Assembly: GCA_023213395.1 (NCBI GenBank)
Contig: CM041465.1
Coordinates: 46,383,741 to 46,447,740, forward strand
DNA length: 64,000 nt
Direction: 5' to 3'
Source: Cycas panzhihuaensis
Lineage: Eukaryota; Plantae; Cycadophyta
Part shown: one piece after another, positions 1 to 40,793 of the stretch
Layout: the number at the start of each line of letters is the position of its first letter
Numbering within the stretch: the first letter of the stretch is position 1
Position numbers and translations under genes: made by a program
The notes under the pieces: model-generated
Told to the model about the DNA's origin: nothing
The model's database searches: none
The model's input: the letters and a program-made list of their open reading frames with translations, nothing else

Positions 1-151
1 GGCTGCTTTATTTATAGCCATCTCTATAAACTAGCTACTAACTCTCTCTCCTAAAAATACCAACTTCATATAAAATATGCATTAAATAATTCTTCATTTA
101 TATTCCTAAAAACCAACTTCATCAATTTGTTCTAACTTTTCGAATGTAATA
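1..151 (-). repeat. Partial 3' LTR of LTR element X (duplicate copy), cut by the window edge
   Basis: Aligns with ~28990-29148 and ~41840-41998 (ctctcctaaaaataccaact...). Followed at ~153-166 by ctctcccctccttg, a polypurine tract on the minus strand. Confidence 0.7.
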
Positions 152-655
152 ACTCTCCCCTCCTTGAAATACTTTATCATTAAAATATAGATAATTGTGT
201 GTGGAGCTTGTTTGGTCTAACTTTGACCAATGGTTCTAGTTGTAACTTGATAATTTTTGAATGTTATAAAAATAGGGTTTAAGTTTGTGGCTTTTATTAA
301 AATTATTGACAAGTAACTTTAATTTATAGATGCTCACTCCTGGGACTAGGTACATGTTATATCTTGTCCTATATTGAACCGATTTTACAACCTATATGGT
401 GCCTTTAATTCTTGGCCTTAATCTTATTTTGTGTTTACACATTTCATCCTTAGATATCATGACAATTGGAACAAGAGGTGATGAGAATACTAAGAAACTT
501 TATGTGGAAAGTTATGATGTAGTTTTGGAAGTCTAGAGAAGAATTGATCATAAGGATTATGAATTGATGATTGCTTAGTATAATAGGGAGTGGGAGAAAT
601 GGGGTTCTAAGGGATGATCAACCATGGATTTGAAGGCATAGAAAATAAAGATGAT

Positions 656-1040
656 TATTAATATCTTGAATCTACGGGTTCATACTAGGAAGAGAAGGAT
701 AGGAAAAGTTACAATTCGATTAATCTATATACAATTCACACCATTTACACCATATATGTACAAATAATCATAGCATGGATATGTAAATAAGAACCATATA
801 ATGTACACAATATTAATTATATTATATCAAAATAAGATGTATAAGAGTTAGATATGATCATCCAAAGCAAGTTCAGAACCATCTTTTAAGGCTAGGATAT
901 GCCACATCGCGTATCCCCCATTTACCTATATTACATAGATATACATATTTAAATCATCATATGTCATTTGATAACTAACTTGAACTAATCCAAAACTAAT
1001 TCTCTTTTGATAACATCATTAACAAAATTGATGCCTAACA
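656..1040 (-). repeat. 3' LTR of Gypsy A1
   Basis: Homologous to 29639-30012 and 38346-38771. Starts TGTTAGG on minus next to the PPT. Flanked by ATGAT at 651-655, the same target site as copy A2. Confidence 0.9.
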
Positions 1041-1059
1041 TCTATCCCTCCCTTTTTAG

Positions 1060-2970
1060 TCCTGAGCATCTCGCTCAGGATTTGCTACTTAATTAGGAAT
1101 AGGAGTTACGTCTGGAGCTGAAGTAGTAGGTGTATTTGAAACTTGACCTAGGGCTAGTCTTGGCGATGCCCTAGAATAAAGTGGGTCTAGTCCTGCCTTT
1201 CAACATCATTTTCAGTTCTCATAACTTACTACTTCAACGCATTGAAGTACTTGTTGTTGATATGCTTTTTCTTCTTCAATGTGGCTTGTTAATTCTTTAA
1301 TTCACTATTCTGAGATTTAGAATTATTCTTCATTTTGATGACAATGTTCTTCTGAAATTTGAAGTCATTCCTCATTGTGGCGAAGGTGATCTTCCAATGC
1401 ATTGATTTTTTATACATGATAAATCTCTCGATTGTACATTTCCTCATTCACTTTCAATAACTAACTATACTCCTTCTCTTTCTTCTGCAATGACTCTTCC
1501 ATTTCACAAGTTGACTTCTTTTCTTGTTGTAAATCTTTTTATAACTATTTAAAATTATCTTTCATTATCTTCAAAAAGGATTCTTGTGCTTGTAGTACTA
1601 TTTGATATGTAGTGATGGGGTTTATTACTCTTTCTCCATTCCCTGATTCTAGTGGATTTTCTTACTCTAGCATCACGACCCCTACATTTATTTCTCCCAT
1701 CAGTTCACATCTTACAGTTTTACTATTAATAGTAGGAGATGCTAGAATATTCAAATATGGTATAATATGCATGTCTTCCTCTTCTCTTGTAGGTATAGAC
1801 TCATTGTCTTCGTCTAGTTCATCAGCCTACCCTCCACTTAAACTAAAGTCCAAGTAATCTGCTACATAGTCTTCATTTGAATCATCTGAATCAATTGAGG
1901 TATCTGATGATTCATCTGTTTCATGTACCATTATAATTTTACACTTCTTCTACTCTGTTTTGACATCCCTTTGAATCTTTAGTTGATTCTTCTTTGGTAT
2001 GGAATCCTTATGGAATATGGCAAGTAATGAAATAGTCAGGCTCCTAACTACCCCTGGTAGGTGAAACTTTTCATAACATAACCCAAGTAAATATAGGGTA
2101 AAATTAAAACTTAATTGTGTTCCCATAGTGAGCTGGTATAGAGATGTTTTCATATTCTTCAAAATAAAAGATGAGTAATTATATATTGTTCCTTTCATGA
2201 GCCCTTGCAAATAGGAAGTCATCCACTATGGTAGTGTATTACAACGTTGTTCCCCTTGTAATCTCATACACATAAGAATTACAACCATTATAATATTTAT
2301 GTACTTCAAGTGAGTTACCAAAATTCTGTGTCCACCATGCTTCATATAAAATTCTCTTTTGCATGTTGTCTGAATGATCTAATCCTTCATTAATGTTATT
2401 AAATTCCTTGCTTTCTTGACTTCATGTCCCTCCTTAGGGAACCCTATCAATCTAACTATGTCCTTTGACTCCATGCTTATAATTTTGCCATTAATTATTA
2501 GTACTCAATCTACCAAGTTATATCCTTGTAATATATCCTGTAGCTTCTTAGAATTCTTAGAAAAAATTAGAAATGATGCTGCCTGAACAACTTTGGCACT
2601 TATTAATTGCCCTCATAATAAAGCATTGCGATCTTCAGCTTTAAGTTATACCCATTTCTGGAGTACTAGGGAATCCAGTAATTGCCACCTGATTTATCGA
2701 CCCCCAATCTCAAATGGTCACTTCAGATCAATTTCCTCTTTAGTCACTTTCTCTAACAAATCTATGAATAGTAGAGTAGTCTAGGCAAATCTTTTAAATC
2801 CCAACATTGTTACTGTCCTCTACCTCATGCTGGCTCTTTGACTACAAATGCTAGCTATTGATCACTGACTACTAATACTAGCTTCTTTAACTAAATCCTC
2901 AACTTCAATGATTGGCTTCTTAAATAGTAGAAGAGGTTGTTTATGCCAATAGCTCTCTTCTCATCCATAT
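1060..2970 (-). pseudogene. Extra 3' ORF of Gypsy A1 (env-like position, same sense as pol): plant-transposon-protein-like domain, acidic tract and coiled-coil tail
   Basis: Reading through stops gives ...LQDILQGYNLVD*VLIINGKIISMESKDIVRLIGFPKEG...WMTSYLQGLMKGTIYNYSSFILKNM...FNFTLYLLGLCYEKF (ORF 1950-2222 is part of it). Conserved in copy A2. Confidence 0.7.
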
Positions 2971-3269
2971 ATATAAGAGGGGAGGGTAATTTTAGCCCAT
3001 GGTTTTGCCCCTAACCATGGGCTATCCATGGTTTTTGCCCATGGTTTTGGGCAAAACATGGGCCCATGGTTGATTAGTTGTCAATGGCTAGTTGATCAAC
3101 CATGATTAGCAGCTAGTTGTCATTCAGTCAATCAATCGTCGTTCAGTCAATCAGTGGTTGGCTGATCAACCACTACCATTTGGTTGATCACTCTTTTTTT
3201 ACCACTATATTTCTCTCTTTCTTTTCTTTTTTTTTAATTATATCTATACTTCACTCACTCTTTCTCTCT

Positions 3270-3374
<105 letters not shown>

Positions 3375-3521
3375 GATATGCTTCTCTTTTTTTTTTCTAA
3401 ATTTAAAATGACTATATTATGTTTCTTGAGTACAATATTAGAAAATAGTATCGAAAGGGAGATCATCATTATTGTGTGATGTTAGCACCACGTAGTCCCT
3501 TCCACTTATGATGTATGATAG

Positions 3522-6500
3522 TTATCCCTGGTGATAGTTACTTGGAACCTTTACTTGAGCCTAGTGATTAGGATGGTCATAGTGTTGATGCTCTTGTCTA
3601 GTTTGGTTGTACTTATATAATTTGAGTTTCGATCCATTGACCACCATTAATATTTTGTCCTTATTGATATGTATTATCACCACTCAGCTATTTCAGAAGA
3701 TTCTTTTGATTGAAAATAGTCTGAGCCAATGAACCTTAAGCTTACAAGGTTTTATGTAGTGTTTACCATCATATTGGAGAACTAAATCTCCTTCTATTAA
3801 TGTTTGTAGATGTAATTTCTTATTATGCCATCCTTTCCTTTGTTGCTATATTGCGTTCATCACCCATTATGCCTACTGTCATTTTTTGTCAAGGTTAAGA
3901 ATAGCTTCTAATCGATTCTAGAGACTCATTTCATCTTGCCATCTTTGTTGAATCACGACCTTTAGACTTAGTACTATAAATTTTATAGGGAGTACTGCTT
4001 CAGTCCCATAAACTAACTGAAATGGTGTATGATTTATTGAAGTTTTGTAAGCCATCCTAAAAACTTATAATACTGAATATAGGTGTTCTGCCTAGTCATT
4101 TCTATTTATATTACATAACTTTGTTAGCATTGTTACTATTATTTTATTACTTGACTCAGCTTGTCTGTTTGCCCCTCGGGTGTTAATTTATGATGTGTAA
4201 TCATAAAATCTTGAGTTAAACAATAAATTATTTCATTTATAAAATATGTTCCCCTATCGCTTATCAATTCCAAGGGACATCCAAATCTTATGATAATATT
4301 TTCATAGAGAAATACCATTTTACTACGTGTCGAATTATTCTTAAGTGCCTTTGCCTTGATCTATTTTGTAAGGTAATCTATTACTACTATAATATATTTC
4401 GCCTGAGTTGTTCATGTTACATGTTTGAAAGGCCTAATGATGTCTAATCCCTATCACTTAAAAACTCCTTAAGCCAATGATGGTTGCAAAGGCATAAAAT
4501 CATATTCAAGTGGTTGTCCTATTTATTGACAGTTATCGCACTTTGATATAAATTATTTTGTATACTTATGCAATTGTAGCCACTATAATCCTGATAGCAA
4601 TATTTTTCTGGCCATACTTTTGGGGCCTAAATGACCACCTGTGGTTCCTTTATGGGCTTCACTAAGTATTACTAGTATTTCTTTAGCCATTACACAACGT
4701 CTTAGAATGAAATCTTTCCTTAGTTTATATAAAACTCCTCTTATTAGTTGATAAGGTGCAACTTTCTTTATCAACTATTTTCATTGTTGTGAAGGCATAT
4801 TGGTGGGAAAAGAACCCAAACTGAGACATCTTATTATATCCTCATAATTTGGAGGTGATATGATTACTTGGAAAAGTTCTACATCTAGAAAATCATCTTT
4901 TATGCTAGAAGGTTCTTCTCTTATTTGAATTCTCGATAAATGATCAACAATAACATGGGTACGTCTTGGTTGAACTACTATTTTGAAGTTGAACTCTTGT
5001 AGCAACAACAACCATAGACTTATCCTTCCTTGTATTATAGGCATATTGATCATATATAAAAGGGCTTGGTGATCAACAAAGAATATGAAAGAGTTTGCTA
5101 ATAAGTAATGTTAAAATTTTTGTACTACATAGATCATTCCTAATGCTTCCCTCTCTATAGTTGAATAATTATTTTTTGCTTTGTTTAAATGTCTACTAGT
5201 AAAATAAATGGGTAAGTCTAATTTGTGACTTTCTTCTTGAGCAAGTGTACATGTAATTGTAATCTTTGATATGTCTATATAAATATGGAATTCTTTAGTT
5301 TAGTTTGGGTGGACTAATATCGAAGTTGTAACAAGTCTATTTTTAAGGTGGTCAAAAGTTATTTGGTGCTCGTCTCCCCAAGTGAAATTCACACCTTTCC
5401 TTAGCAATTCTTCTAAGGGGTGTGCAATATAAGCAAATCCTTTTATAAACTACAATAATACCCAATGTATCTGATAAAGATTTAAACCTTTATGTTATTC
5501 AATGGTGGTGTTAATTTCATAATAACTCTAATTTTATCTGGATCTATTTTTAGTTTGTAGGCACATATAATGTGGCCCAATAATTTCCTATATGGAACCA
5601 AAAACTGACATTTCTTAGGATTTAGTGATAATCTTGTTTCCCAACAGATCCCCAAACATTCTATTAATAATGGTAGGTGATTTTTAATATTTCCATAGAT
5701 AGATCAATCGTCTAGAAATACTTTTATTGACTTCTAGGATAATTGGTCAAATACGTGCATGATTATTGACATATAATGTGGCCTAATAATTTCCCATATG
5801 AAACCAAAAACTAACATTTCTCTAAATTTAGTGATAATTTTATTTTCTGATAGATCTCCAAACATTCTATTAATAATGGCAGGTGATTTTCAGTATTGCC
5901 ATAGATAGACCAATAATCTAGAAATACTTTTACTGACTTCCAGGATAATTGGTCAAACACGTGCATGATTATTCGTTGAAAGGTAGCAAGTGCATTACAC
6001 AAACCAAATGGCATCTAATTGTAGGCAAATATTCTAGTTTGAGTAATAAAAGTAGTTTTCAATTTTATTTTTTTTCTGTAATACTCATTTGATTGCATCC
6101 CAAAAACCCATCCAAGAATGAATATACCTCGTTTCCTACCACTTCTTCCAATATCATATTAGTAAATGGTATAGGAAATGGGTCCTTACAAGTTACTATA
6201 TTTAATTTTTGAAAATCTATATAGGTACATAATTTCCCATTTTTCTTAGGAACTACCACTATTGGAGATACCCAGTCACTAGCCTCAACCTTAAATATAA
6301 TGTGCGCATCTAGTATTTTCTTAATTTTAGCATCCACTTGTTTTGCATATTTGGGATTCATTTTGTATGGTCTATATTTTATGGGTTTTGATCCTGGTAT
6401 TAGTTTAATTTTATGCTCACATAACTATTTTGGTATTCCTTTTAGATCCTTGTATGTCCACGCAAAAACATTTTTGTATTTTATAAAAAAATTATTGTTG

Positions 6501-7812
6501 CTGCTACTAACATTAGATCCCATGTTTTTCCTAATATAATCTTTTGCTTGCTCTGTTCAGTTCCCAAAGTTATAAGTTATTGTGGTACTTCTTCATAACA
6601 TATTTCATTCTAAAATTTATGTGCTAGATCTTGTGATATTATTTAATTTCCTTTAGTAATCTCATAGAAGTATCATGGATATTTGGGTTATTCATTAATA
6701 TTTTGGATATGATAAATAGTTGCATTATCAAGAGGTTCTATGTGAACAAGATAACATAAACATATTTCATATTTTTGCTATTGCCAATGAAATAATCCAC
6801 TATTTATGTCTAATTCATCTTCAGAACATGCGTCCAAGTATAAAACACCTTCAATAGGTTCACATATATTATCATGGTCAAATATTGTACTCAAAGGATG
6901 TTCCTCTTTAGTATTATTAGTATAACCATTCTCATCAACATTAATATCATTATCATCAGACGAACTAGAACCTACTAATTCTTTGCTTATAATATGATGA
7001 TTTAGATTAATTAGTTACTTCTTCCCCTTTTGTTTAATTGTCAATGTGTTACGTCCCTAATTCTGGAGTACGTGTGCATTTCGTAACCAAGGTCAACCTA
7101 GTAGGGAATCATAAGGTGGAGGTGTTGCATTAATCAGAGGTATTATAACAAAATCTATTATAAACTCTTGATTTCCTAATTTTATTTTCTATGCTCATAT
7201 CATCCCTAACAGTTATATACCATGTTGATCAACCAGTCATAACCAGAATGTGGGAGGCCATAGTTTAGGTCTACCGATTGCTTCCCAAGTTGTAACTGGA
7301 ATAATGTTTACTACAACCCCACCATCAATCACTGTCTTCTCCAACATATGCCTTAGTATATTCATTGAAATAATTATGTCTTAATCGACCTTAAGAGATC
7401 GTACATGATGGTATTCTATGTCAGATTATTACATGGGAGCTCTACATTCTTTTGTTAACATTCTCTCTATTCTTATTGTCTTGATTTACTATATGTAGTC
7501 CTTAAATATTTGTAGTAGAAGCCCATTATTCTTGAGTAATGCTAACAAGTTGATTGTTATCTCTTTTTATAGGAGTTGTTCTATAATTAAGGTAACAATA
7601 TACTTATGTGTTGTATCATCTTTTGTTGTTGTTAATTCTATCGATCCACTTTTTGTTGGTTTTGTGAGTGATGGCTTAGTCAAACTCAGATCATACTCCT
7701 ATTTTTATAGTGCTTATACCAACTTGGTGGCCTGACTCAAGCATTCTTTTTCATTCTAAGGGTTAGGATATATTGATTGCTTCTTGTATACACCGCATAT
7801 ATTGGTAATGGT
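3522..7812 (-). pseudogene. pol: Decayed pol (PR-RT-RH-INT) of Gypsy A1
   Basis: ORF fragments 6065-6361, 5811-6014, 4781-5053 and 4583-4774. Protease-like VIDGGVVVNII near 7300-7335. Many premature stops. Confidence 0.92.
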
Positions 7813-7839
7813 GGAGATCACTGATGATGAAACTGGACA

Positions 7840-8362
7840 TCCATAGATTCCTCCTTAGAGAAAAAGAACCTAAGGGCTTCGTAAAGATGAGGGATTTATT
7901 CTATAAGAGATTAAGAGCCAGCAACTATCCTAGAAAGTTTCTACTACATTACTTCAGTCAAGTATCTTTGAACGACCACCCTAAGCTACTTAAGAAGTAT
8001 TGCTCTGATGCAATACCTAAGGGTAAGAGGCCCCTTTAGTGCTCAAACTAGACTATTCTTAGTTTACAAGGGAGTTTAACCTAGGGGCCACCCTAAACCC
8101 TAAACTCTTTAGGCTTTGCCAATAAGACCTTGACTTGAGGCATATTCTGAGAGCTATGATCTACTGGAAAAATCCCAATAAACTTGAAACATTTCTAATA
8201 AGGAGTAAATTCCTTCCTAATCCTTATGTCAACACGGTTACAATAGTTGATGAGCCTTTATCTATGGACCCTAATGATTGCATTTTGGAGGGTACTAATC
8301 TTGGAAGACTAATTAACATCATGTTAGAAATGGAGTAAGAGGAAGAAGAAGTTAATGAGTAA
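7840..8362 (+). pseudogene. C-terminal (thumb/linker) part of the PLE RT ORF, upstream partial copy
   Basis: HRFLLREKEPKGFVKMRDLFYKRLRASNYP continues the peptide cut at 12420. Then ...WKNPNKLETFLIRSKF..., an acidic tail and TAA at 8360-8362. No GIY-YIG motif follows. Confidence 0.85.
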
Positions 8363-8603
8363 TTATATTATAGGCTTGGTGATGGGAGACTTAGACCCCA
8401 CACTTTGCCCATCTTTCTCTTATATTTTTTAAATTTTTTAGCTTTAGCATTGGCATGATTCCTGTGCATATCTATGCAAGGCACTTGATTGCCTCAAGGT
8501 ATTTTTAGTGAGGATTTGTTGTGCACTTGGTGTTGGCATGATTCCCATGCTTATGATTTATCCCACATTCATGAGCATAAGGCACCCAACTACCTTATTG
8601 TCC

Positions 8604-8613
8604 CTATATATAA
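8604..8613 (+). promoter_or_regulatory. Candidate TATA box in the PLE pseudo-LTR
   Basis: ccTATATATAAc, ~30 bp upstream of the hammerhead motif and ~330 bp upstream of the ORF1 ATG. Confidence 0.45.
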
Positions 8614-8640
8614 CTTCCTTGGGGAGTTAAGAGTTCATAC

Positions 8641-8680
8641 ATCTGCTGATGAGCTCATAAAGAATGAAATGCATTTAGAT
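8641..8680 (+). ncRNA. Decayed minimal type I hammerhead ribozyme motif
   Basis: atctg-CTGATGA-gctc-ataaa-gaat-GAAA-tgca-tt-tagat. Reversing transitions only gives atctg CTGATGA gctc...gagc GAAA cgcg TC cagat, the typical PLE-associated layout. Confidence 0.78.
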
Positions 8681-8937
8681 TCTCCTTTTTGTACTTTTAT
8701 GAAGTTTATAATGCAAAGAAGATATTTGCTTAAATCCTAGCATTCTTTATGTTTTGGTGTTGAAGTCTCTTCCCTTTTTTGCTACATTGTTGTCATTTCT
8801 ATTTCAGAATACATTATTTACTGCATGCTTGTTATCTTGTTATTTTTAGATCCTAAAACTTAGTTATCAGTTATTGCCAAGTAATATTTTTTGGAAGAAG
8901 AGTTAATTGATCTGCAAGAAATCTAGAGGTATCGAGA

Positions 8938-10890
8938 ATGCCTCATAGTTCATCCATTGATTCTGCCAGGGAAACCACTAGCAGGAAATGTGTAGTAGTT
9001 TCCTTACTACTTAATTCATCTAGAACAACCATAGTTGAGGTTGCAAATGTTCCTTCTATTGAACTCCAACAAATCTAAGACCAAACCAATACCTAAAGAT
9101 TCAACAAGTTAGTTGAACTAGAGGTCTAGAATTGCACCAAGGTTATTATAAGGGAAAATGACCAATTAAGAGGAAGGAAATCAACTTTCTATATAGAAAA
9201 TGATCGATTAAGAGCAGAGAAATCAACTTTTCAAATAGAAAAATCAACTTTTCAAGCAGAAAAATCATCATTTTAAGAAGAAATGTCCAGGCTCCAAACT
9301 ACCATCACGTTGTTTGAAAAGGGAAGGGAAACAATAAGGATCATCAGGCAAGAAGAATTATGGGAATTGGAGGACTCATTATGAACTCATGAAGAATCTT
9401 TGTGTCTGGACTTTGAGAGGAGAATTAATGAGTATCTTGCAGCTTAAAGAGCTGAGTTTGATTGCTAACAAGCTAAGCTAGACACATGCCTTGTTGAAGC
9501 CATCTCCATTGCTAATGAGCGCAATGCTAACCCCCCTCCCATCTAGCCTCCTCTCCCTCCTCATCCTCAACCCAATGTCAATTTCTCCATCCCTCTAATC
9601 ACCCCCCTACCTCAGACCCTTCTTTCTTAATCCCTACATCCTCTTTTTCTTTACCCCTACAGATCAATAACCTTATTTCTAAAGCCTTGATAGAGTTTAA
9701 AAAATAAACTGGGAAACTAGATAGATCTGTTAGAACTTAATTTTGGATGAGAGAGCTTAACACTGTATGATCTCTTCCTCCCATCCTCAAGATCACTCCC
9801 TTAAAACCAAGATTGTTGATGAAGTTATCTAAGCCCAGATGTTTGCCACCTTCGAGCAAACATAGAATGAGTCTAATGAAAAATTTTTAGATCTATATAT
9901 TAACTCCTTAGCAGCAGCCAAGGATAAGTTTAGGGAACATGTTTCTTCCAGCTCTTCCCAGTTAAGAGAAGTTATTAGGACCCTATGTACCTCCCTATCC
10001 CAAATCAGTTTCCTTAGGGCTACTAATCACATGAAGATTGCTAGTTCATGGTTCAAAAAAGCTGTGGAGGATTTCAAAAATAAGTGTAATCACTGGCTCA
10101 TAGAAAAATCAATTAGAGATAGTTTGAGATAGGTAGCTAATAATGCCTGCCAGGAAGCGTGTGACACTACCATGAATGATGTCGATACCATGTAGGTCAA
10201 ACCTTCGTTCACTGAATTGGTGAATTTAGCCATTAATCAAAAGTGTACCACACTCTAGGACCAAATCAAGGAACTCAAATAGCTCCTCTCTAGTAACACC
10301 TCTACCTCCTCTATTGCACTGGCCTTAACTTTAGCTGGTAATAATAAGAAGAAGAGGAGATGTAGAAATAGAAGAAAGAATAGGCAACATAACTCTCAAT
10401 CTGGTGAATAATAACAAGGCCCAGAAAATGAGCCTTCTAAGGGTGGAGGAATGAATAACTCCACTCCTAGTGTTGCATAGTAGTTACCTTAAGAACATAA
10501 ATTAAACCAGCATGCTCATAGCAAAATGCCTGCTTGATCTATCTCATGGTAGCCTTCCTCAAATAGAGGGCAATATCAGCCTTTGTCAAATCAACTGCAA
10601 AATTAATCGTATAGGAGATTTCATTAGAGGAGAGGACTGTGGAAGATGTATCAACCTTTTGGATAATAAATGAATTATCAGATGTAGTTCCAGAATCCTT
10701 GGGGTATACAAAACTAGTTCTAGCCATATCAATAGATGTAGATGCCTCAAATGTTACAGATGCCTCAATGGAGTCAATAGGGTAGTGGGCACCCTATCCA
10801 CTAACAGTCTCAGAGGAGAAGTAGAACCCCCCTAATGTGCTTCAAACTAAACTAATGGGGTCTGGCCCTTGATAGGGCCTATTTTTCTCT
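8938..10890 (+). pseudogene. PLE ORF1 / N-terminal extension: coiled coil, Pro-rich, basic (NLS-like) and Gln/Met-rich regions
   Basis: ATG at 8938 (MPHSSSIDSARE...). Heptads ENDRLRA EKSTFQI EKSTFQA EKSSF*E. PPLPPHPQP near 9540, NNKKKRRCRNRRKNR near 10340. Most stops are TAA/TAG, restorable to Gln codons. Confidence 0.72.
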
Positions 10891-10893
10891 AGG

Positions 10894-12420
10894 ATGATGC
10901 CTTCTCAAGTGGAGTACAAGGCTACTAACCTTTCCATCCATAATCTCTCTGATAGAAGGCTCTCCTATCATGAGAGTAAGTTTCTAGACTTGGGACTCAA
11001 GTATATCCCTTGCCTGCCCCCTATGAAGGTTGATGAAATTATCAAAGAGTTTAACAACTTTGCCTGCCTTCTTTGGTTACATCATTTCTTTGGAAAGGAG
11101 GATGATAATAAGCAAATCGATCCTTTCAAGATACCTAACTCTAACTGGAACCCCCCTAGCAATTATCCTCCCTTAAAGAGGATAATCTAGATTGGAAAAG
11201 TAACTCTTTTAAAGAGGCTATATGACACAAAGAGAAAGGATATCGTTCCTTTCTCCCCTAAACTCAAGAAGGCTCTTTCCTCTCTACAAAGGGATAAGAG
11301 TATTTTCATCAACCCAGCTAATAAGAATCTCATAATGGTGGTGCTTAACAAATCTTAGTATGTTGAGGAGGCTATGAGGCAACTTTTGGATATGTTGGTT
11401 TATCAACAAGTAGATCAAGTTCCTTGGGACCACATGTGGTAGAGTTTACATCAGATCATCTATAGGTATCAGTCTATTCTGAGTAGTAAGATGAAGTTTC
11501 TCTTAAAGTATCCCCCCCAATCTACCCACCCTTGTGCCTTCTATCTCTTACTGAAAATCCATAAGCCTATTCTTGTTGGTTGTCCTATCTACAGTTACTA
11601 CCAATATCCCCTAGAACCTACCTCTAAATTTCTCCACTATATGATTCTTCCTATCCTCCTTCATTAGAAAAACCACCTTCCTAATTTTATTTCCCTTCTT
11701 TGATCTCTTTCAAATGTTAAATTTCCATCGAACATCCTTCTTTTCACCTTCGATGTTGTGTCCCTCTACCCTAGCATCCCTACCACTGAAGGCTTTTTTT
11801 CCCTCAAGGAGATGTTGACCAACTACTTTATTATAGATTAGGGTCAAAATCCTTCCTTTGTTATCTTCCTCTTAAAGCTATCAGAAATTGTGCTCAGGGA
11901 ACATTACCTTGAGTTCAATAGTCTCTATTTTAAATAGATCAGAGGCACAACCATTGGTAGTAACTTTTCTTTAATGTATGCCTACCTATTCCTCTGCCAT
12001 CTTGAGAAAACCTTAGAAGAAAAACTTAACCATCAAAACCTCTTATTTTATAAGCACTTCATTGATGATGCTTTTGGGATTTGGGATGGTTCAACTTCAA
12101 AGCTTCAAAATTACTTTGATCAGTATTAGTAAGTGTATCATAATAATATTAGGATCATCCGTATTGTCTCCAATAAATCCATCAACCTATTGGATATTAT
12201 TTTCTACAAGGATGATTATTTTGAGTCAACCAACCTTCTTTCAACCAGCTATTATTAGAATCCATTGAATGTGTATCAATACATCCCCTTTAGTTATTGG
12301 TACCCTAGGTACCAAAAGTCCAGTTTCATCATCAACGAGCTCCACATATTCCTCCTTAGAGAAAAAGAACCCAAGGGCTTCATAGAGATGAGGGATTTGT
12401 TCTACAAGAGATTAAGAGCC
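10894..12420 (+). pseudogene. Penelope-like reverse transcriptase
   Basis: IHNLSDRRLS..LDLGLKYIP; INPANKNL (DKG-motif variant); FYLLLKIHKP; TFDVVSLYPSIP (motif A, ~11746); *IRGTTIGS (motif B', ~11935); KHFIDDAFGIW (catalytic DD, 12058-12069); INLLDI; YQYIPFS. Confidence 0.92.
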
Positions 12421-15400
12421 TACATTTGAAGATCTGGTAGATTATCAAGCAATGCGAGGGTGAGGAGCATATAGATTCTAATATACATGAATTGTCCTCA
12501 TTTTGGAATGGAGATGATCCTTATCTACATGTATAAAATTATGTTCACTCATGGATAACTAATGAAATCTCAAAAACGAAATGGGCACAATGATAGGGGC
12601 TAATGTTTAAAGGAATTTTTGTAGTCTAATATAACTATTATGAGAAAGTAAAGTTAGTAGATTGAGATATAATGATCCAAAAATTTTATTAGACTTTTGT
12701 ATACCGCAATAAAGATAGATAAACTAAAGGTATTCTATAGATTTCTAAAGAAAACATAGTAGAAGAAGAAAAGAATTGCTTCTACAAAAATAGAGAAGAA
12801 GAAGAAGAGAATCAAACTTTTTCCCTAGGCTATTCTATAATAGAATATGGGGAATGCACCATAGATGATATTCCAACATGCAAGGTGAGTCTAGATGGAA
12901 AAATAGTAGAAGGGGAGAAGCTTAAATAACAGGAAATTAATATTGTAATAAAGGAGCAACCCTAAATCATTAATTTGCAAGATTATTAGGATGCAGAGAT
13001 GGTATAATAAGCTACCTCATTGTTTCTAGAATATAAAGATGTTTTTGCATTGTCTTATAAAGATTTAAAGGGCATTCTACATGAATTAGGAGAACATAAG
13101 ATATAATTAATAGAAGGGGCTAGACCTATAAGGCAATAATCATACCACATGAATCCAAAATACAAAGAAAATGTTAAAGTAAAACTCAATAAGTTGATTG
13201 AAGAAAATTATATTTTTGAGGTAGAGAATAACAAATGGGTGAGTTCAATTGTAGTTGTTTTGAAAAAGAATGGGAAACTTAGAGTCTGTGTGGATTACAG
13301 AGCTCTAAATAAAGAAAAAAAAAATAATCCATTCCCAATTCCATTCATTAAGGATATTTTAGAAAAAGCTATAAGATACAAAGTTTATTCATTCACAAAT
13401 GGATTTGGTGGATATAAGCAAGTGCATATTACCTTTATCATAAAATAGAGCATGCATACATTTATAGTTATATCATTCAGACTAACCAATGCCTTAGTTA
13501 TGTCTCAAAGAGTAATTTTCAATATTTTTAATCAAACTATTAGAAAAATAATTGAGGTATTTTTAGATGATTAGATATTATTCACTTTGTTAAAAAATCA
13601 TCTTGGCTATTTACATTTAATGCTCAAAACCTACAGAAAGAGAAAATTGTATTTGAACCTTGCAAAGTGTACATTTATGGTTCCTTTTAGGACTTTATTC
13701 AGTCATATGGTATCACAAAATGGATTGCTTATAGACCCTAATAAAGTAGCTGTGATCTTAAACTTTCACGTGCTTGAAATAGAAAAATAGATCAAAGGGT
13801 TCTTAGGAATAACAAGATATTAGTGAAAGTTCATAAAAAAATTTATACTCAGATAGCTATTAGAAGCCTTGCTGAAAAAGAAAGCTGGGTGGCAATGGAA
13901 ATTACAGTAATAACTTGCATTTAAGCTTTTAGAGGAGAAGATCATCTAGGCACTAATACTATGATTTCCTAATTGGGACAAACCATTCCATATACATATA
14001 GATGCCTCTTTACTTACTATTGCATGTGTATTAACACAACTAGAAGATAATAAAGTAGATTTGTCGATATACTTTATAAATTACAAGTTAATAGAAGTAG
14101 AACAAAATTATTCAATAACTGAATGAGAAGGCTTGGGTATAATCTATGCCCTTCAAAAATTTAGGCATTATTTACAAGTTAATCTAGTTTTTTTTTTTTT
14201 TTTTTTTTTTTGTAGACCACTAAACCTTATAGCACTTGGTTAATAAACCCATTTTACAAGGAAGAATCAGCCAATGGTTGATGTTATTCCAAGAGTTCAA
14301 CTTTAAAATTATGGCGAAAAGAAGAGATAAGTATGTAATCCTAAACCTTTTATCAAGGGACTCAAAAGGAGAACCAGCTATGGGAATTTAGGATAACTTT
14401 CCAGATGTAGAATTATTCTCTATTGAAGTAGTACCTAAATGGTACATATAGATTACATAATATTTGTCTACAGGATAAACACCATCAGGCATGGAATGCA
14501 TAGAATGACAAAGTTTTATTCCAAAAACATTTCCCTTTCAATTAATTCAAGGGATGATATACAAGTTAGGACCATACCATGTGTTGAGGTGATGTATAAT
14601 GGAACATGAAGTAGAAGTTATCATCAAAGAAGCCCATAAAGTTGTGACAATAAAGCATCAAGGTGTCAAACCCATAGCTAAAAAAATTTTATTAGCTAAA
14701 CTTTAATGGTCTACATTAATTTAGGATGTGGAAAATTAGATTTATAATTGTGACACATGCTAATGAGTTAAGAAACCAACATAGAATCATTTGATGCCTT
14801 TATATCCCATTCTAGCCCATGTACCATTTAAAAAATGGAGACTAGATTTTGTCAGACTTATTAGTCCACTAGTTAGATGAACAAATGCAAGATATATTTT
14901 AGTGGCTACGGATTTCTTGACCAAATGGATAGATGTAAAACTAATGAGAATATGCAATGCCCAAAGTACAACTTAATCCTTATATGAAATTATCATCATT
15001 TGATTTGGTTGTCCCTTAGAAATTGTTTCTAATCAAGGAAGTAATTTTTTAAATGAGATAATCGAGTATCTTACAAAGGAGTTTATGATTTAACATTCTA
15101 AATATTCTCCATATTATCCTCAAGTAAATGGATAATTGGAGAGCATGAATAAAATTTTAAAATTAACATTATCTAAAATCTGTAATAAAGGGAGAATAGA
15201 TTAGGTAGAGTGACTCTATTTGGTATTATGGACAGACAAAACAACAGTAAAAAGACCACATAAAAAAACACTATTCCAGTTAGTTTATGGTTTAGAAATA
15301 GTACTTCCTCTTGAATTCCAAATAGAAAGCCTAAGAGTGGCCTTACAGTTAATACTACTAGAGGAAGATTTAAGGGAGTAGTGACTTACTGAATTAATGA

Positions 15401-17079: not shown

Positions 17080-17512
17080 TATTAGATTGTATAATGTAAA
17101 CTTATGTAATTATTTATGTCACATGTCTAAAATACAAATTAAGTCATTATAATATTTTTATCTTAGGTAGATTTAATTAAACTTGTGGAAGGTCGTTGAA
17201 TTTGCGAAACTACATTTCAACGAACCTCCTTGGTACTTAACCTCCTAAATTCCTGGAATAGGTCAGCCAGGAATCTAGGAGGGCTGTCCTAATGCCTCAA
17301 GGCTGGTCTGCATTTCTGGTGTAGTTTCTTTACATGGTTTTATGTTCTATATTTTCATTAATAAAATTAGATAACTTAGGAGGTGGTTTTTTCTTCACCA
17401 AAAGGGGTTTTTCCACCTGTCAATCTGTGTATATGTGCAGTGTCATTTGTTGCCTGTAATTGCTTTACTGTGATCCTGTCATGACATTGTTCATATGCCT
17501 ATTTTTCTTACA
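17080..17512 (+). repeat. 5' LTR of Copia 1
   Basis: Highly similar to 24226-24653; termini TA...CA; followed directly by the PBS. Confidence 0.95.
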
Positions 17513-18547
17513 TGGTATCAGAGTGTAGTATGCCTGTTTTTTATCTTATGCCTCTTATTTGATTTTTTTTTATTAACAATTCAAAATTTTTTTTTGGTCA
17601 ACTGATCATGTATTCAAAACCAAGTCTTTTTTAAAACCACCATTAAGGCAAAAAACCCTCATTCAACAATAGTTTTTTCAGACAAATAGCCTTTTATACA
17701 AACAAGTCCTTTATTTAAACTGCCATTAAGACAGATTTTTTTTTACATATCAGTCCATAGATTTTTTTTTTACATCAAAACCTATACAGGCAGAGCTGAA
17801 CAAAAACGAAACCTGCCATTAAGGTAGAGTCAAACAAAAAGAAACTTGCCATTAAGGCAGAATTGTACAAAAAAAAAAAAACACGCCATTAAGGCGTAAC
17901 TGCATAAAAGAAACCATCACTGAAAGTAATATGTCTAGTGCCCTATTCAATTCTCCTTTCTTTTTTATACTCTATTTTCCTATGACGGCAGAGGTGTAGT
18001 AGGTCCTCGTATAATAGGGTTTATAACCATGCAACAGCCCCATGTATAGCAGCACCGCCAAATCACGTATTCAGCAACTTTGTTTTTAGGCCATTTCTTT
18101 CCAAATCTTGGCCAACAAGGTCTTACAGTTCCTCCGAGGGATAAAGTTGTCATCCTTGGAGACAAAAATACTAAAGTTATGTATGTGAAGGAAGATGATC
18201 CTCAGAATTTGAACAAGAACTTTTTCTTAAAGCTTTTCTGCCAACATCTGCTCCTTTAATGAGCTTGTAGCCCTGTGGGAGAAAAAGACTGGGAAGACTC
18301 TTGAGAAGGTCTATGTACCCGAGGAGCAAGTGCTCAAATCTTTTGCAGAAACCCTTTACAGAAACATCAATCCTCCTCCTGTCAGAACACTAAAGAAGGG
18401 CCACAACATTCAACACATTCTATAAAATAAAAAGGGGAACAAAAACAAAGAAGGGCCACAGGGTTGCTTCAAGCCCCAGATACCAAAATTCTAAAGCATG
18501 AGCCAGACGGAGAATCCCTGAAACGTCTGGCCGTCAAAGCTTGTCGA

Positions 18548-18720
18548 AGTTTGGACAGTGAAGAGAAGCCTAGACAGAGAAGAGAAGTTTGGATAGTGAA
18601 GAGAAGCATGGACAGAGAACAGAAGCCTGGACAGAGAAGATAAGCTGTGCTCTTACAAAGTCTGGACAGTGAAGAGAAGCTTGGACAAAAAGGATAAGCT
18701 GCGTTCTTACAAAGTCTGGA
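18548..18720 (+). repeat. Degenerate ~18-20 bp tandem repeats in the Copia 1 leader
   Basis: Recurring gaagagaagcctggacag / aagtttggacagt units. Confidence 0.8.
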
Positions 18721-19935
18721 TGCTGGATGCCATCATCGAACCTGCACAGACAAGAATCACGTTGCCTCGAATGCGATGAGGAGAAACAGGTAGGGCTTTT
18801 AACCTAACCCCCCCTCCCAGATTTTAATTTGTATTACTTTTTAACTTACTTTGTTAAAAACTAAATTCCCGTCAGGTCCGCCGACCTTTCTTTTCTAATT
18901 TTCTTTATTTTTGATTTTATAAATAATACCCCCCCCCCCCCCCCTTTATATTATATCTTGATTAAATTCAAATACCCCCTTTTAACTTTATAAAACACCT
19001 TTTATTTTTTTGATTCAAATGAATCAAAACCCTCCCTCTTAAATTTTATAAAGTTTTTTATTTTTTTCTCAAATCAATTTGTTGATTTCAACTATAATGA
19101 CTTAATTACTTTGATTTCAATCAAAGTCTTACCCCTCTTATTAAGTTATTTTTTAATTTATCTTGATTCAAATGAATCATTATTGAGAATTTTATACTTT
19201 AATATAAATCAAAGTTTTCCCCTGTCAAAGTTAACACTTTGATTTAAATCAAAAATTCCTTTTATATTAATACTTTAACCCCCCCACCTCATGTTGTATT
19301 TGACACTTCGATTAAAACCCCCCCACATTATATACTTTGATTTTAAGGAAATCCCTCCCCCCCCTCCACATTATATTTCATATTTTAATTATCCCTTCCC
19401 TTAGATTCTTTTTTATTATTTTAACAAACTTTAAAACCCTTCCTATAATACTTTGTTAAATTAACTCAATACCCCCTTTATTTGTAATACAAACATTGTT
19501 TACAAAATCCTATGCTCTTAAGCCTACCTCCTATAAGATATATATAAATCTTTTTATTACCACTCTTTAAAACTTGTTAACGAGTAAATTTAACCATAAT
19601 CTAATTAATCCTTCACCATTATATCTTTTATTTTTCTTTTAACACCTAATCTATAAGATTCAAACTTAATTTTAAAATTTTATACACTTTTGTTTATAAA
19701 AAGGGGAAACAATTTATTTTTTTTTCTCTAAAGGGATTTTTCCTAAGAGGGATTATTTTTTCTAAAAGAAATTTTTTTTGTCAAATATAATTGCTTAATT
19801 GTTGTCTGTTTCTGTGTAAAAACCTATGATTTTTTTTTTTAATGAAGATGTCCTTGTAAAGATTAGTGTTTTTTAAGTAGTTATTAGGTCACCTTCATAA
19901 TTTTTAATCTTTAAATACACCTCAACATTCCCAAT

Positions 19936-22900
19936 ATGGCAGTAATGCCAGGGGCAATCACCTGTGTTCTAATTCCAGTGTTAACTGGCTCAAACTATGC
20001 CGACTGGAGGAATCGCATATCCCATAAGCTTAAATAGCAAAAAGTATGGCGATATGTAACAAGTGAATTTCAAAAACCAAAAGCTGATGCTACTGAGAAT
20101 CTTATGGTATATCTGATGAACTCAGATGCCGCATTAGGCACCATATTAAATTCTCTTTCACCAAAAATCAGTCGGTAGTTTTTTGAAAAAGATGACTTAG
20201 CCACTGTCTGGAAAACCTTGGAAGAAAAATATGACAAGGTTGATACACATCAAGTAGCAATCCTAGAAGAGCAACTATATAATCTTACCTTTGATGACTT
20301 TACAAATGTTGAGGATTTCTTAACAAAAATTTAATCAATCAATAAAGATTTAGATAATTGTATTAAATCAAAAACCAAGGAAGGTGATATAGAAAAAATA
20401 ACTACGCATGTCAAAGATGATGACACTCTCGTATGTCTTGCAGTCAATAAATTACTAAAACACTTCAATCTTTACCAAGCTGCCAGACAACAAGCTGGTA
20501 ATCCACCCATCACATTCAATTAGCTGACAAATCAGCTGATTGAACATCAAATAATGTTAATCAGAACCGATGCAATAAAAGATCAATTACAGGCTTTATT
20601 TTCTAAAACTAAGCCACAATTTAAACATAAACAATAGAATAATAATATTCATAATAACAATAAAAAATACCAGAAACCTCATCGAGGTTCACCTTATAAT
20701 ACTCACAATAATGTTAAATATTCTGGTCCAACTAAAAACCAGAATACTTCTAATCAATACGTTTCTAATAGAAACAATGCATCTTCTTCTCAGAACTCTA
20801 GTTATGCCTAATGTCATAAAAGAGGCCATACTATTGATATCTGTAGAAGTAGAATAGCCTCAAAAGCATGGAAAACTTCCAAGGGACTGCAAAATAAACA
20901 GCAATCCCATCCTCAATCTCATTTCCAATCAAACTCTCAAGCACAATCACAAAATCGTCAATTTCATAACCGTTCCTTAGCAGCAACAACTTCTGCGTTT
21001 GTTGCTTCTTCCAATCAACCACCTCAATAGATCATTGACTTTGGTGCATCCCATCATATGACTGGACACCAAAAAAACTTATCCACCTATTAATTTGAAA
21101 CGAACTCTGAAGAAGAAATTTCATTTGGTAGTGGTAATCAACTCAAAGTTAAAGGATCTGGGGACGTTATCCTGAAGGATGATTCAATCAAGGACATTTT
21201 TTACGTACCTGGTTTGTTACCAAACCTTCTCTCAGTATATCAAATTTGCCAAAAAGACCTTGTAGTCGAATTCTAGAAAAATAAATTTGTCATTAAAGAT
21301 CCATTACACAAGTTCAAATGTATTACTTCAGGACTTGTTAATCATAATACAGGTCTCTATAGCATGATTAGTTTTTAAAATAATAAATCAAAATCATTTA
21401 GTGCCTTCATTGCGAAATTTGACTATGTCAACAAACTTTGGCATGCAAGATTTGGCCATACTAGTTATGGCAAATTGTAATATTTAATCAAGCATGAAAT
21501 GGTTCATGGTTTACCACCATTAAACACTATTTATGGTGTTTGTGAAGCCTGTGTGACAGGCAAACAACACATGGATCTATTTCCACATAAAACTTAATTC
21601 TGAGCTACTGTTCCACTAGAACTTGTCCACTCTGATATATGTGGACCTTTTTATATTCCATCATATTCAGGATCTCATTATTTCATTATATTCATTGATG
21701 ATTATTCAAGAAAATGTTGGGTTTATATGCTCAAAACACGCAGTCAAGTGTTTGACATTTTCATTGAATATAAAACATTAGTGGAAAATCAATCCAATTC
21801 AAAAATTAAAATATTCCAATCTGATAATGCTAAGGAATATTTAAGTAAAAATTTCATCTCTCTCTGTAAATCAAATGGAATTAAATTCCAACATTTAGTT
21901 GTATATACAGCTCAACAACACGGTGTTGCGAAATACAAAAACTGTACTCTTATTGAAATGACTCGTTGCATGTTACATGCAAAGAATCTCGATATAAAAT
22001 TATGGGTAGAAGCAATTAACTGCTCTAATTACTTATTAAACTGTTTACCCAGTAAAAGTATACAAAATGTCACTCCAGAACAAAAATGGTCTGAAAGGAA
22101 ACCGTCTGTTCAACACTTACTAATATTCGGTAGTATCGCCTAGGGACATATTCCTCATGAAAAATGTAAAAAGCTAGATAAAATAAGTCAAAAATACATC
22201 TTCATTAGCTATAGTGAAGAAAGTAAAGCATATAGACTTTTAGATCTAATCACGTATAATATTTCTATTTTGCGTGATGTAGTATTTGATGAAGAAGGAT
22301 CTACTTCAACATCTACTTATGTAGAAATCCTTGTTAAAAACTTATTAACCAACACTCATTTGGTTGATGATTCTGAAAAACAAGTTGATTCAAACATCAT
22401 AGATTCTTTATCAACTCAAGTCCAAAATTAGCCTTTATTAGAACCAGCTGATATAGATTCTTCTCTTCAACCTAGCACATCGAATCAACCTACAACCTCA
22501 GATTTAGTTACTCATAAGCAATCAACTTAGGCAACCAAAATGCTTGCTGATGCTGGATCTAATGTAGGTAATCCTACTAATACTAAGTGCACATGTGCGC
22601 AAAAACTTTATGCAAATTTTGCTTTAGTAGCAAAAATAATGGAAAACAATGATCCCAAAACCTTTAAACAAGCCAGCAACAATCTTGTCTGGCAAGATGC
22701 TATGCAAACCGAATTTGCTGCCTTAATAAAAAATTCTACCTAGGATCTTGTTCCACTTCCACCTAGAAAAAATATAGTTGACCGTAATTGGGTTTATAGA
22801 ACTAAATATAATTCAACAGGCGAAGTGGAAAAATATAAAGCTCGTCTTGTTGCCAAAGGATTTTCCCAAATAGATAGCATTGACTATAATGAAACCTTTG

Positions 22901-24180
22901 CACCTATTGTAAAAATGAACACAATCAAGACCATCATTGCTCTTACAGCAAAATTTGGTTGGGAAATCCACCAAATGGATGTTAAGAGTGCCTTCTTGAA
23001 TGGTGATCTCAAAGAAGAGATCTACATGTCACAGCCACCTGGATTCATTGAAAATCCTAATTTAGTCTGTAAACTAAAAAAATCCATTTATGGTTTAAAA
23101 TAAGCTCCTTAAGCTTGGTATACTAAAGTTGATGATTACTTAATCCACATTGGATACACTAGATGTATTAGTAATCCAAATCTCTACTTTAAACACATTC
23201 TAATTATTTATGTTGATGATATTATTATCACTGGATCATCAACTCACAATATTCATCAGCTCAAATCAACCTTAATGAACAAATTTGAAATGACAGATTT
23301 AGGACTATTACATTATTTTCTAGGTTTACAAATTTATCAAAATCAATCAAATATATCACTATCTCAACCTAAGTATATTCTTGATTTACTCCAGAGGTTT
23401 AACATGGAAAATGCTAAACCTGTAACCAATCCTTTACAATCAGGAGTTAAACTAACTACTAATTGTTCAACTCTGTTATGTGATCAAACTCTTTATAGAC
23501 AACTTATTGGTAGTCTAATTTATCTTACACACACCCGCCCTGACATTTCTTATGCTGTTGCTTTATGTTCCAGATACATGTAACAACCACATGAATCTCA
23601 CTAGAAAGCAGCTAAATAAATCTTACGTTATCTAAAGAATACCATATTTTATAGTTTAATTTATAACTTTTGTACTAAACCATTAACATTAACCGGATAT
23701 ATTGACTCCGATTGGGCAGGTGATTCAAATGATCGTAAATCTACTTTTGGTTATGTATTTTTTATTGACTCCTCACCTATTACTTGGTCAAGTAAAAAAA
23801 TGCAGGCACTGACATTATCAACAACTGAAGCTGAATATCGAGCATTAGTCGAAGCTGGTAAAGAAGCACTTTGGCTAAAATCTTTACTCAATGAAATTGG
23901 TCTGACTCTAAACTCTTCAATTGAAATTAAAGTTAATAATCAATGTGCAATTGTTATTACTTCTAATTTTGTTTCACATTTTAGAACTAAACATATAGAA
24001 TTACATTAACATTTTATATGTAATTTAGTTACTAATAATATTATTTGTTTGTCTTATTGTCCAATAGATTTACAGATTGCCGATATACTTACAAAGTCTC
24101 TAACTGAAGTGAAGTATTTACATCTTAGAGATTTATTAGAGATAAAAGAAGTCTCCATCAAAGGGGGATCATCATGCTGA
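19936..24180 (+). pseudogene. gag-pol: Copia 1 gag-pol (gag, zinc knuckle, PR, INT, RT, RH) with premature stops
   Basis: ATG 19936 (...LTGSNYADW), CHKRGHTIDIC ~20810, IIDFGASHHMTG ~21030, VHSDICGP ~21625, KYKARLVAKGF, HQMDVKSAFLNG, YVDD ~23210, DSDWAG, RTKHIE. Confidence 0.95.
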
Positions 24181-24225
24181 AGATCTTCTTTTCTCTCCAG
24201 TACAAAAGGTTACATTAAAGGGGGA

Positions 24226-24653
24226 TATTAGATTGTATAATATAAACTTATGTAATTATTTATGTCATATATCTAAAATAAAAATTAAGTCATTGTAATA
24301 TTTTTATCTTAGGTATATTTAATTAAACTTGTGGAAGGTCGTTGAATTTGTAAAACTGCATTTCAACAAACCTCCTTGGTACTTAACCTCCTAAATTCCT
24401 AGAACAGGTCAGCCAAGAATCTAGGAGGGCTATCCTAATGCCTCAAGGCTGGTCTATTTTATAGGTAGTTTCTTTACATGGTTTTATGTTCTATATTTTC
24501 ATTAATAAAATTAAATAACTTAGGAGGTGGTTTTTTCTTCCCCATAAGGGGTTTTCCCACCTGTCAATCTGTGTATATGTGCAGTGTTATTTGTTGCCTG
24601 TAATTGCACTGTGATCCTGTCATGATATTATTCATATGCCTATTTTTCCTACA
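24226..24653 (+). repeat. 3' LTR of Copia 1
   Basis: Follows the PPT, matches 17080-17512, followed by TSD ATCTC. Confidence 0.95.
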
Positions 24654-31950: not shown

Positions 31951-32251
31951 ACATATATAAGGGGGAAGGGCAATTTTAGCCCATGGTTTTACCCTTAACC
32001 ATGGGCAAAAACCATGGGCTACCTATGGTTTTGCCCATAACCATGGGATACTTATGGTTTTTGCCCATGGTTTTGGGCAAACCATGGGCCCATGGTTGAT
32101 CGGCCGTCAGTGGCCAGTCAATCAACCACGATAGATGGCCAGTCATCGTTCAACTAATCGGCCACTATTATTCAACCGTCATTTTTTTTTTTACCACTAT
32201 ACTTCTCTCTTTCATTTTCTTTTTCTTTTTTCTTTTTTTTATTACAACTAT

Positions 32252-32254
<3 letters not shown>

Positions 32255-32306
<52 letters not shown>
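32255..32306. repeat. (CT)n microsatellite
   Basis: Directly visible. Confidence 0.98.
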
Positions 32307-32310
<4 letters not shown>

Positions 32311-32509
32311 TATATATAACAACTACATTTCTCCCTTTTATTTTTTACATAAATAATTATACTTTTTCTCTCTCTTATCTTTTTTTAAAATTTAAAATGA
32401 CTATATTATGTTTCTTTAGTACAATATTAGAAAATGGTTTCAAAAGAGAGATCATCATTTTTGTGTGGCATTAGCACCATGTAGTCCCTCCTGCTTATGA
32501 TGCATGATA

Positions 32510-40380: not shown

Positions 40381-40793
40381 TGTATTCTCCAGGGTTTCCC
40401 TATGATGGACTTCATCTATGTGATCACTTCATTGCATGGTTGAAACACCTTAACTCTATCTCTCGATCAAGATTCTTATTTAAAGGTTATTACTTGATAG
40501 ATCCTAGTAGTTAAAGGATGCATTCTCTAGGGTTTCTGCAGGATGGATTCTATCTTTGTGATCACTCCATTGCATGGTTGAAACACTCTAACTCCATTGC
40601 TCAATTGCGATTCCTATGCAGATGTTATTACTCGATAGCTTTTGATAGTTAAAGGATGAATTTTATAAGGTTTCCCTATGATGGATATTGTCTATGTGAT
40701 CACTCCATTACATGGTTAAAACACACTAATTCTATCACTTGATTATGATTTCCATGCAGATGCTATTTCTTAATAGCTCTTAATAGTCAAAGG
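40381..40793. repeat. Three diverged tandem copies of a ~138-bp unit inside element X
   Basis: Units start at ~40381, 40519 and 40657 and share gtgatcactccattgcatggttgaaacac and tagttaaagga. Confidence 0.92.

Follow-up and report, generated by a model that had tools for sequence, protein, structure and literature searches.

No mobile elements are more closely related to telomerase than Penelope-like elements (PLEs) without an endonuclease (EN), which have been thought to be confined to chromosome ends. EN-deficient, telomere-associated PLEs have been described from Selaginella moellendorffii and from the 'Coprina' group (Gladyshev & Arkhipova 2007, as reported in PMC8557442 and PMC4209133), and the attachment of such elements to telomeres and their formation of chains have also been described (PMC8557442; PMC12477314). 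In seed plants, EN(-)PLEs of Pinus taeda and Picea abies are listed in a review (PMC9033089), which cites Lin, Faridi & Casola 2016. Through analysis of 64 kb of Cycas panzhihuaensis DNA (contig CM041465.1; this whole stretch is called the window, and all positions refer to it), a single PLE copy has been identified at positions 7811-12420. It is a dead copy of a PLE. It lacks EN, as a preliminary description of the locus had observed, although the interpretation offered there is only partly supported. The copy is a dead member of an already described type of PLE, and it represents a separate, old family, since its protein identity to the nearest gymnosperm relatives is only about 45%. Intact relatives are likewise without the domain, so the absence of EN is a trait of the whole clade and was not caused by a deletion in this copy.

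The element is recognized by its second open reading frame (ORF2), which encodes the reverse transcriptase (RT). In a blastx comparison with full-length relatives, the plus-strand segment 10876-12420 gave E values between 1e-131 and 1e-141, the alignments covering more than 510 residues at about 45% identity, in one continuous frame with ten in-frame stops (eight of them TAG) and no frameshift, which bears out the PLE-type RT noticed earlier. The segment begins at the canonical PLE N1 motif and breaks off at 12420; it contains the PLE-specific N-terminal motifs (IHNLS..LS..E..L.LGLK[FY]IP and the ADKN.G 'DKG' block), the RT motifs and the thumb. The same N-terminal motif is present in an EN-bearing (EN+) PLE protein, P0154. 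The RT motifs A and B are separated by 63 residues, the spacing being 57-63 across the proteins compared. The broken ORF2 was read through with X placed at the breaks only, and in its alignment to 14 family proteins the invariant columns include ADKN, GT.MGSNF and IDD.

The remaining part of ORF2 is located at 7840-8335 of the plus strand and encodes the end of the thumb and a C-terminal block, PLVLKLDYS...TLNPKL...YWKNPNKLETFLIRSKF, aligned by blastx with the last residues of P0074, P0076, P0016 and P0063. With two further in-frame stops, at 8060 and 8123, ORF2 has 12 in all, TAG accounting for 9. The frame is also shifted by the loss of 1 nt from the C run 8031-8034; other copies have an extra C at 8030/8035. 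Every intact relative stops a few residues past the block ending in FLIRSKF, as had been proposed for this ORF, whose frame here runs 37 codons beyond the relatives' end to a TAA at 8336 (CAA in other copies). The copy has apparently decayed since its insertion mostly by transitions, which make up most of the differences between this region and the contigs of public runs, in a count that takes in flanking repeats.

The PLE segment, lying on the plus strand, is circularly permuted: the 3' end of ORF2 (7840-8335) stands first, upstream of a spacer with a putative decayed hammerhead, of the ORF1 remnants, and of the ORF2 N-terminus with the RT. This permutation was not spelled out in the preliminary description. 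A repeat search revealed an 80-nt direct repeat (7840-7919 and 12341-12420, 91% identical) at a spacing of 4501 nt, which makes the segment one unit of 4501 nt with a terminal redundancy of 80 nt. The first 28 nt (7811-7838, plus strand) are, by the same kind of search, the reverse complement of 12318-12345, complementary at 25 of 28 positions; the source of this inverted piece lies just upstream of the 5' truncation point and overlaps that point by 5 nt. The unit plus 80 nt, together with the inverted 5' piece, has the structure of a partial tandem/inverted PLE insertion. Contigs from four public runs, representing three species, join 12344-12419 directly to 7860-7926, and ORF2 is thus contiguous in other copies. 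The order of the intact unit is ORF1 (predicted helical, with a basic tail), ORF2 (N-terminal motifs, RT, thumb, short C-terminal block and stop) and a spacer with a type I hammerhead. Summed contig depth peaks at 8048-8234 (the C-terminal block) and at 11975-12161 (RT motifs B-C), the two most conserved coding blocks, and this suggests that several diverged PLE families exist in the three species.

Intact relatives of ORF2 are found in public protein sets, where they are already annotated as 'uncharacterized'. When a 63-residue RT piece free of stops was compared with 1.84 billion representative proteins, 56 matches were returned, the best of which were models of Ginkgo biloba, a Logan protein and proteins of Selaginella moellendorffii. 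ORF2 is collinear from the first to the last residue with intact proteins of 580-626 aa from Cryptomeria, Picea, Ginkgo and Selaginella. By blastx, residues 5-623 of the 626 of Cryptomeria japonica LOC131042973 (P0074) are aligned at about 45% identity, and residues 2-578 of the 580 of Selaginella XP_024523476 (P0016) are covered, with 37.5% identity over 490 residues. The proteins P0076 and P0079 are also collinear, and the 90% cluster of the latter includes Picea glauca KUM45112.1.

The preliminary description found no GIY-YIG motif either C-terminal or N-terminal to the RT, and this stands for the copy and for its intact relatives alike. A hidden Markov model (HMM) of 171 positions, built on the linker, Zn-finger and GIY-YIG region of 53 EN+ PLE proteins, matched 53 of 53 held-out EN+ proteins at E<1e-5 in a control; on the six frames of all 64 kb its best score was 0.5 bits, and on 17 EN-minus relatives at most about 0 bits. 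Pfam returned nothing for the stop-free ORF2 pieces, because these are too short. The intact Cryptomeria, Picea, Ginkgo and Selaginella proteins do not carry the domain: hmmscan identified GIY-YIG in P0154 and P0163 and none in P0074, P0002, P0016 and others. According to precomputed Pfam annotation, the roughly 80 closest relatives of P0002 possess only PF28514, PF26215 and RVT_1, and the first protein with a PF01541 match is P0154, at 33% identity. The CxC motif is absent from the window, P0074, P0079 and P0002; P0016 has one, at residue 418, which is not N-terminal to the RT.

The EN+ proteins share a post-thumb block (PPIFKCLPPP ... SPRFISLRHPTL..LVRA) and then continue for about 170 aa into the Zn-finger and GIY-YIG, whereas the EN-minus proteins end at the corresponding block (PLVFKLDYS ... 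HIP.P.ICW.NP..L...LV.S). Since both groups have the block, the EN-minus ORFs stop where the EN would start, and an alternative view of the C-terminal block as a relic of GIY-YIG was rejected, given that EN+ proteins carry the same block ahead of their EN. A contig of another copy (run X4) consists of 12015-12424, 71 nt and 7995-8352, and that copy is therefore also without an extra domain.

The position of the RT was examined in a tree (IQ-TREE, LG+C20 PMSF, quick search) of 73 rows and 610 columns. The window RT is sister to Ginkgo (SH-aLRT 93), is joined by the Cryptomeria and Logan proteins (98) and then by a Picea-type pair (100); outside this gymnosperm clade stand Selaginella (99) and then Closterium (97), and a GIY-YIG clade of 17 rows is separate (100). 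Forcing the window RT into that sampled EN+ clade was rejected by the approximately unbiased (AU) test (log-likelihood difference 119, p-AU 2.4e-6). As far as the sampled clade is concerned, the copy does not group with EN+ elements.

Judged by the tree and the named matches, the clade spans streptophytes, with Closterium, Selaginella, Ginkgo, Cupressaceae and Pinaceae. The named plants among the P0002 relatives listed are Cryptomeria, Ginkgo, Selaginella and Closterium, with Picea represented by a cluster member, and no flowering-plant protein is among these named matches. Angiosperm proteomes are by far the best sampled. Such a range, which starts with a zygnematophyte alga and takes in Selaginella, Ginkgo, Cupressaceae and Pinaceae, with no flowering plant among the named matches, is more in keeping with long vertical descent than with horizontal transfer, which has been proposed for conifer Dryads. 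The suggestion that the locus represents an undescribed EN-minus family, and the best candidate for a novel system in the window, is not upheld: full-length proteins of the clade are already annotated for Cryptomeria, Picea glauca, Ginkgo and Selaginella, and the review mentioned above (PMC9033089) lists conifer EN(-)PLEs, citing Lin et al. 2016. A search of the available literature found no paper on such EN-minus elements in Ginkgo, Cupressaceae or Closterium.

Between the end of ORF2 and ORF1 lies a non-coding spacer (8336-9129, plus strand), the pseudo-long-terminal-repeat-like part of the element, without a long ORF. Relatives are laid out alike, with ORF2, an interval of 250-1100 nt, a hammerhead, and then ORF1 or the 3' end. 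Their hammerheads were found by pattern and by a purpose-built model only; in 22 relatives, 99% of the cells in nine pairs are standard, seven of the nine pairs covary, and no shuffle or slid register comes near. The model made from these 22 relatives (R1) gives 9.9 bits to 8633-8687 (plus strand), the top match within 8225-9325, the 1.1 kb where relatives carry theirs, at E 0.07. The conserved core is complete, with CUGAUGA at 8646-8652, GAAA at 8666-8669 and a cut site after U8675, accompanied by a palindromic helix III (AUGCAU) and a 5-bp helix I (AUCUG/UAGAU). Positions 8646-8669 read CTGATGA GCTC ATAAA GAAT GAAA, compared with CTGATGA GCTC ATATA GAGC GAAA in the metagenomic relative L018. 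Helix II is thus GCUC/GAAU versus GCUC/GAGC in the relatives, with two of four pairs broken, both by transitions. Rfam reported no hammerhead in the window at the gathering threshold, in 7000-13500 at E<=10, or in 20 related loci. The spacer had been called hammerhead-bearing; an intact core at the expected place speaks for this, the two broken pairs and the Rfam result do not, and we take 8633-8687 as a decayed type I hammerhead by position and homology rather than by score. The top R1 match in the window, 7808-7839 (CACTGATGATGAAAC, CUGAUGA..GAAAC), is non-significant and lies inside the inverted piece; it was taken as chance because it is the complement of coding sequence.

ORF1 is represented by remnants at 9130-10477 of the plus strand, in two frames (9130-9543 and 9866-10477) with several stops. 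The stretch 10013-10369 aligns with the N-terminal part of the Ginkgo model Gb_11119 (P0003) at 29-33% identity; the remnants have no Pfam match, and ORF1 shows no similarity to the ORFs of 80 related loci. The AF2 prediction consists of three long helices at pLDDT 61, a low confidence, and the tail is basic, NNKKKRRCRNRRKNR. An upstream coiled-coil ORF had been reported at this place: the ORF, its predicted helices and its basic tail are there, but the test for heptad periodicity was not significant, and on the predicted model a coiled coil is plausible. Tandem repeats of 21/42 nt occur inside ORF1 at 9154-9263 and encode repeated EKSTFQ-like units.

A connection with telomeres is visible in the relatives. 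A scan of metagenome contigs yielded 80 loci. In nearly all of them the series CTGATGA, helix II, GAAA and palindrome stands either 250-1100 nt past the ORF2 stop or some 2.7 kb ahead of the ORF2 start, or at both places. Among the loci L010, L039 and L038, a degenerate CCCTAAA-rich tract follows 150-470 nt past the hammerhead, and then a true (CCCTAAA)n array or the 5' end of the next copy. In L039 (5700-6302), (CCCTAAA)9 stands right after the 3' end of the element; in L010 (5600-6400), the same 3' end is directly followed by the 5' region of the next copy; in L038 (1-110), (CCCTAAA)n precedes a 5'-truncated copy. By this arrangement, the relatives attach to telomeric G-overhangs and form head-to-tail chains there, which is the known lifestyle of EN-minus PLEs. 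The 64-kb window contains no telomere array, and no tract is present past its putative hammerhead; a candidate degenerate tract at 9064-9098 was not supported.

A telomere-like dimer of 14 nt, CCCTAAACCCTAAA, is located within ORF2 at 8091-8104 (plus strand) and consists of two reverse-complement plant telomere units. It is the only perfect match in 64 kb, with 0.04 expected, and encodes T-L-N-P-K. The Picea-like locus L001 (2144-2164) encodes F-L-N-P-K as TTC CTA AAC CCT AAA, choosing the same synonymous codons although the two proteins are only about 45% identical, and (T/F)LNP is kept at the protein level in Selaginella, Cryptomeria and other relatives. The agreement of the codons of this telomere-complementary 14-mer with those of the Picea-like relative is an unexplained detail. 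It is conceivable, if rather unlikely, that gymnosperm EN-minus PLEs of this clade left the telomeres and spread independently through giant genomes by break-primed copying of longer-than-unit RNA (tandem read-through or hammerhead-circularised), in which case CCCTAAACCCTAAA would be a nucleotide priming or annealing site and not a protein motif.

The copy is interstitial and sits inside a Gypsy-type element, as had been stated. On the left, positions 1-7812 belong to a direct repeat at least 7.8 kb long, which has a second copy at 28996-36584 (87-91% identical) and a third, partial one starting at about 41874. The right flank contains a decayed Ty3/Gypsy pol at 12990-15300 (plus strand), with RT, RNase H and integrase read from the translation; Pfam gave no match for two short pieces of this Gypsy RT, and no Gypsy gag or protease was seen upstream of pol. 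The repeats, the first of which is cut by the window start, are about 29 kb apart and are possibly the giant long terminal repeats (LTRs) of a Tat/Ogre-like Gypsy element. Elsewhere in the window, a nested Copia-type element occupies 17080-24653; its 433-bp LTRs are 92.6% identical, and Pfam rve marks an integrase core at 21727-22140. A 138-nt unit occurs three times in tandem at 40381-40794, the copies being 75-78% identical.

At the left junction, homology to the flank stops at 7812, where the paralogue and contigs of run X3 read on with TGTACTTCC..., and GT at 7811-7812 is common to flank and element, a microhomology of 2 nt. At the right junction, a filler of about 50 nt (12421-12470, boundaries approximate) separates the PLE end from the start of Gypsy homology; no source for it was found elsewhere in the window, and many contigs have loose ends at 12485-12500. 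The right flank differs from the continuation of the paralogue past 7812, and no target-site duplication (TSD) was found at the junctions. Entry at a DNA break or with an endonuclease supplied in trans had both been suggested. The absence of a TSD, the 5' inversion, the filler and the lost target DNA fit the former, while the latter has no support because there is no TSD.

We consider it moderately probable that a chromosome broke within a giant LTR retrotransposon and that the copy was made there by EN-independent target-primed reverse transcription. The broken chromosome end would have served for priming in place of the telomeric free 3' end used by its kin. Starting inside the RNA, at 12420 (hence a 3' truncation), copying would have crossed ORF2, ORF1 and the spacer with the hammerhead on a template longer than one unit, either a tandem-pair read-through or a circular RNA, and continued for 80 nt past one full unit. 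A short template switch at the end could have produced the 28-nt inversion, and the ends may then have been joined through the 2-nt microhomology on the left and the filler on the right, with several kb of target lost.

A possible, though clearly less probable, alternative is an ordinary PLE partial tandem, that is, a 5'-truncated and a full-length copy with pseudo-LTRs, inserted into the long repeat and followed by a single filler-repaired deletion of the 3' quarter of the downstream copy, the rest of the repeat and the Gypsy gag-protease region. Plant break repair commonly involves filler DNA and kb-scale deletions, and the copy is old, its 80-nt overlap being 91% identical, which fits insertion followed by deletion. 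The order of ORF2 3' end, hammerhead spacer, ORF1 and ORF2 is that of a normal PLE partial tandem (PMC8557442) and recurs in the relatives L001 and L016-L036. The sole point against this course of events is that the right breakpoint has to fall within 80 nt of the point matching the left truncation; a break would be required here too, as an EN-minus element needs a free 3' end anyway.

Considerably less likely still is a capture at the DNA level, without new retrotransposition. Here synthesis-dependent repair or ectopic recombination would have filled a double-strand break with 4.6 kb taken from an existing head-to-tail array of PLEs in a (sub)telomeric region. Such chains are formed by relatives (L010), a unit plus 80 nt resembles an excerpt of a tandem array, and filler is present while a TSD is missing; however, the 28-nt inversion of sequence lying just upstream of the 5' end is a classic mark of reverse-transcription template switching or twin priming, and no telomere repeats stand between the two partial units. 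Finally, although PLE families can lose their EN (PMC8557442) and EN+ Dryads exist in conifers, an origin from an EN+ PLE by deletion, or the mobilisation of an EN-minus element by an endonuclease acting in trans, is scarcely credible and largely refuted, as intact relatives from four plant groups all terminate at the same point and lack EN, union with the sampled EN+ clade is rejected by the AU test, the six frames hold no EN trace, and the missing TSD and truncated 3' end are unlike the outcome of an endonuclease-made nick.

Several points weigh against the reading of the locus as an EN-minus PLE, with a hammerhead, inserted by EN-independent priming. Over the whole window, the hammerhead candidate has an R1 E value of 4.3 and ranks fifth, which is not significant alone. 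The EN model was derived from one animal EN+ clade only, and the 17 EN+ rows of the tree are of sponge type; a place in the named Coprina clade is tentative. The favoured route is not distinguishable from a normal partial tandem with a later deletion, the 80-nt coincidence being weak evidence (roughly 2-6%), and it was read from the occupied site.

Compared with known systems, the element shares a PLE RT, a tandem structure of pseudo-LTR type and a putative hammerhead with both Dryad and Chlamys/Naiad/PLE-X. In contrast to Dryad, an EN+ Penelope/Poseidon element of conifers, it has no C-terminal Zn-finger linker or GIY-YIG, and its ORF ends where the EN+ proteins continue. In contrast to Chlamys/Naiad/PLE-X (features according to PMC8557442), it has no N-terminal GIY-YIG, no CxC motif and no insertion-in-fingers domain; the start at the N1 motif, the lack of CxC and the 63 residues between motifs A and B show that it is not of this type.

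With regard to the mode of insertion, EN-independent L1 insertions at DNA breaks were reportedly described by Morrish and colleagues in 2002. The present copy shares with these the lack of a TSD, a 3'-truncated element, target DNA loss, filler and a 5' inversion; it differs in belonging to another class of retroelement, in a template longer than one unit and in the lack of poly(A).

The closest resemblance is to the EN-minus PLEs themselves. Like the conifer EN(-)PLEs, the element is a seed-plant PLE without EN, and its clade holds Picea glauca KUM45112.1 and Cryptomeria japonica LOC131042973; it is set apart by a protein identity of only about 45%. The Selaginella proteins that group with the window RT are presumably the elements described in 2007. 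As in the Selaginella/Coprina PLEs, GIY-YIG is absent, an ORF1 lies upstream, the spacer has a putative type I hammerhead with a short palindromic helix III, the RT is 37.5% identical to that of XP_024523476, and metagenomic members of the clade end in (CCCTAAA)n. Unlike them, the window copy is interstitial, the 64 kb being free of telomere arrays, and its only telomere-like sequence is the 14-nt dimer, which is placed in ORF2, about 540 nt upstream of the putative hammerhead, and does not adjoin it. The result extends the described EN-minus PLEs and does not introduce a new kind of system: a plant EN-minus lineage also leaves interstitial relics, and the junctions found here resemble break repair.

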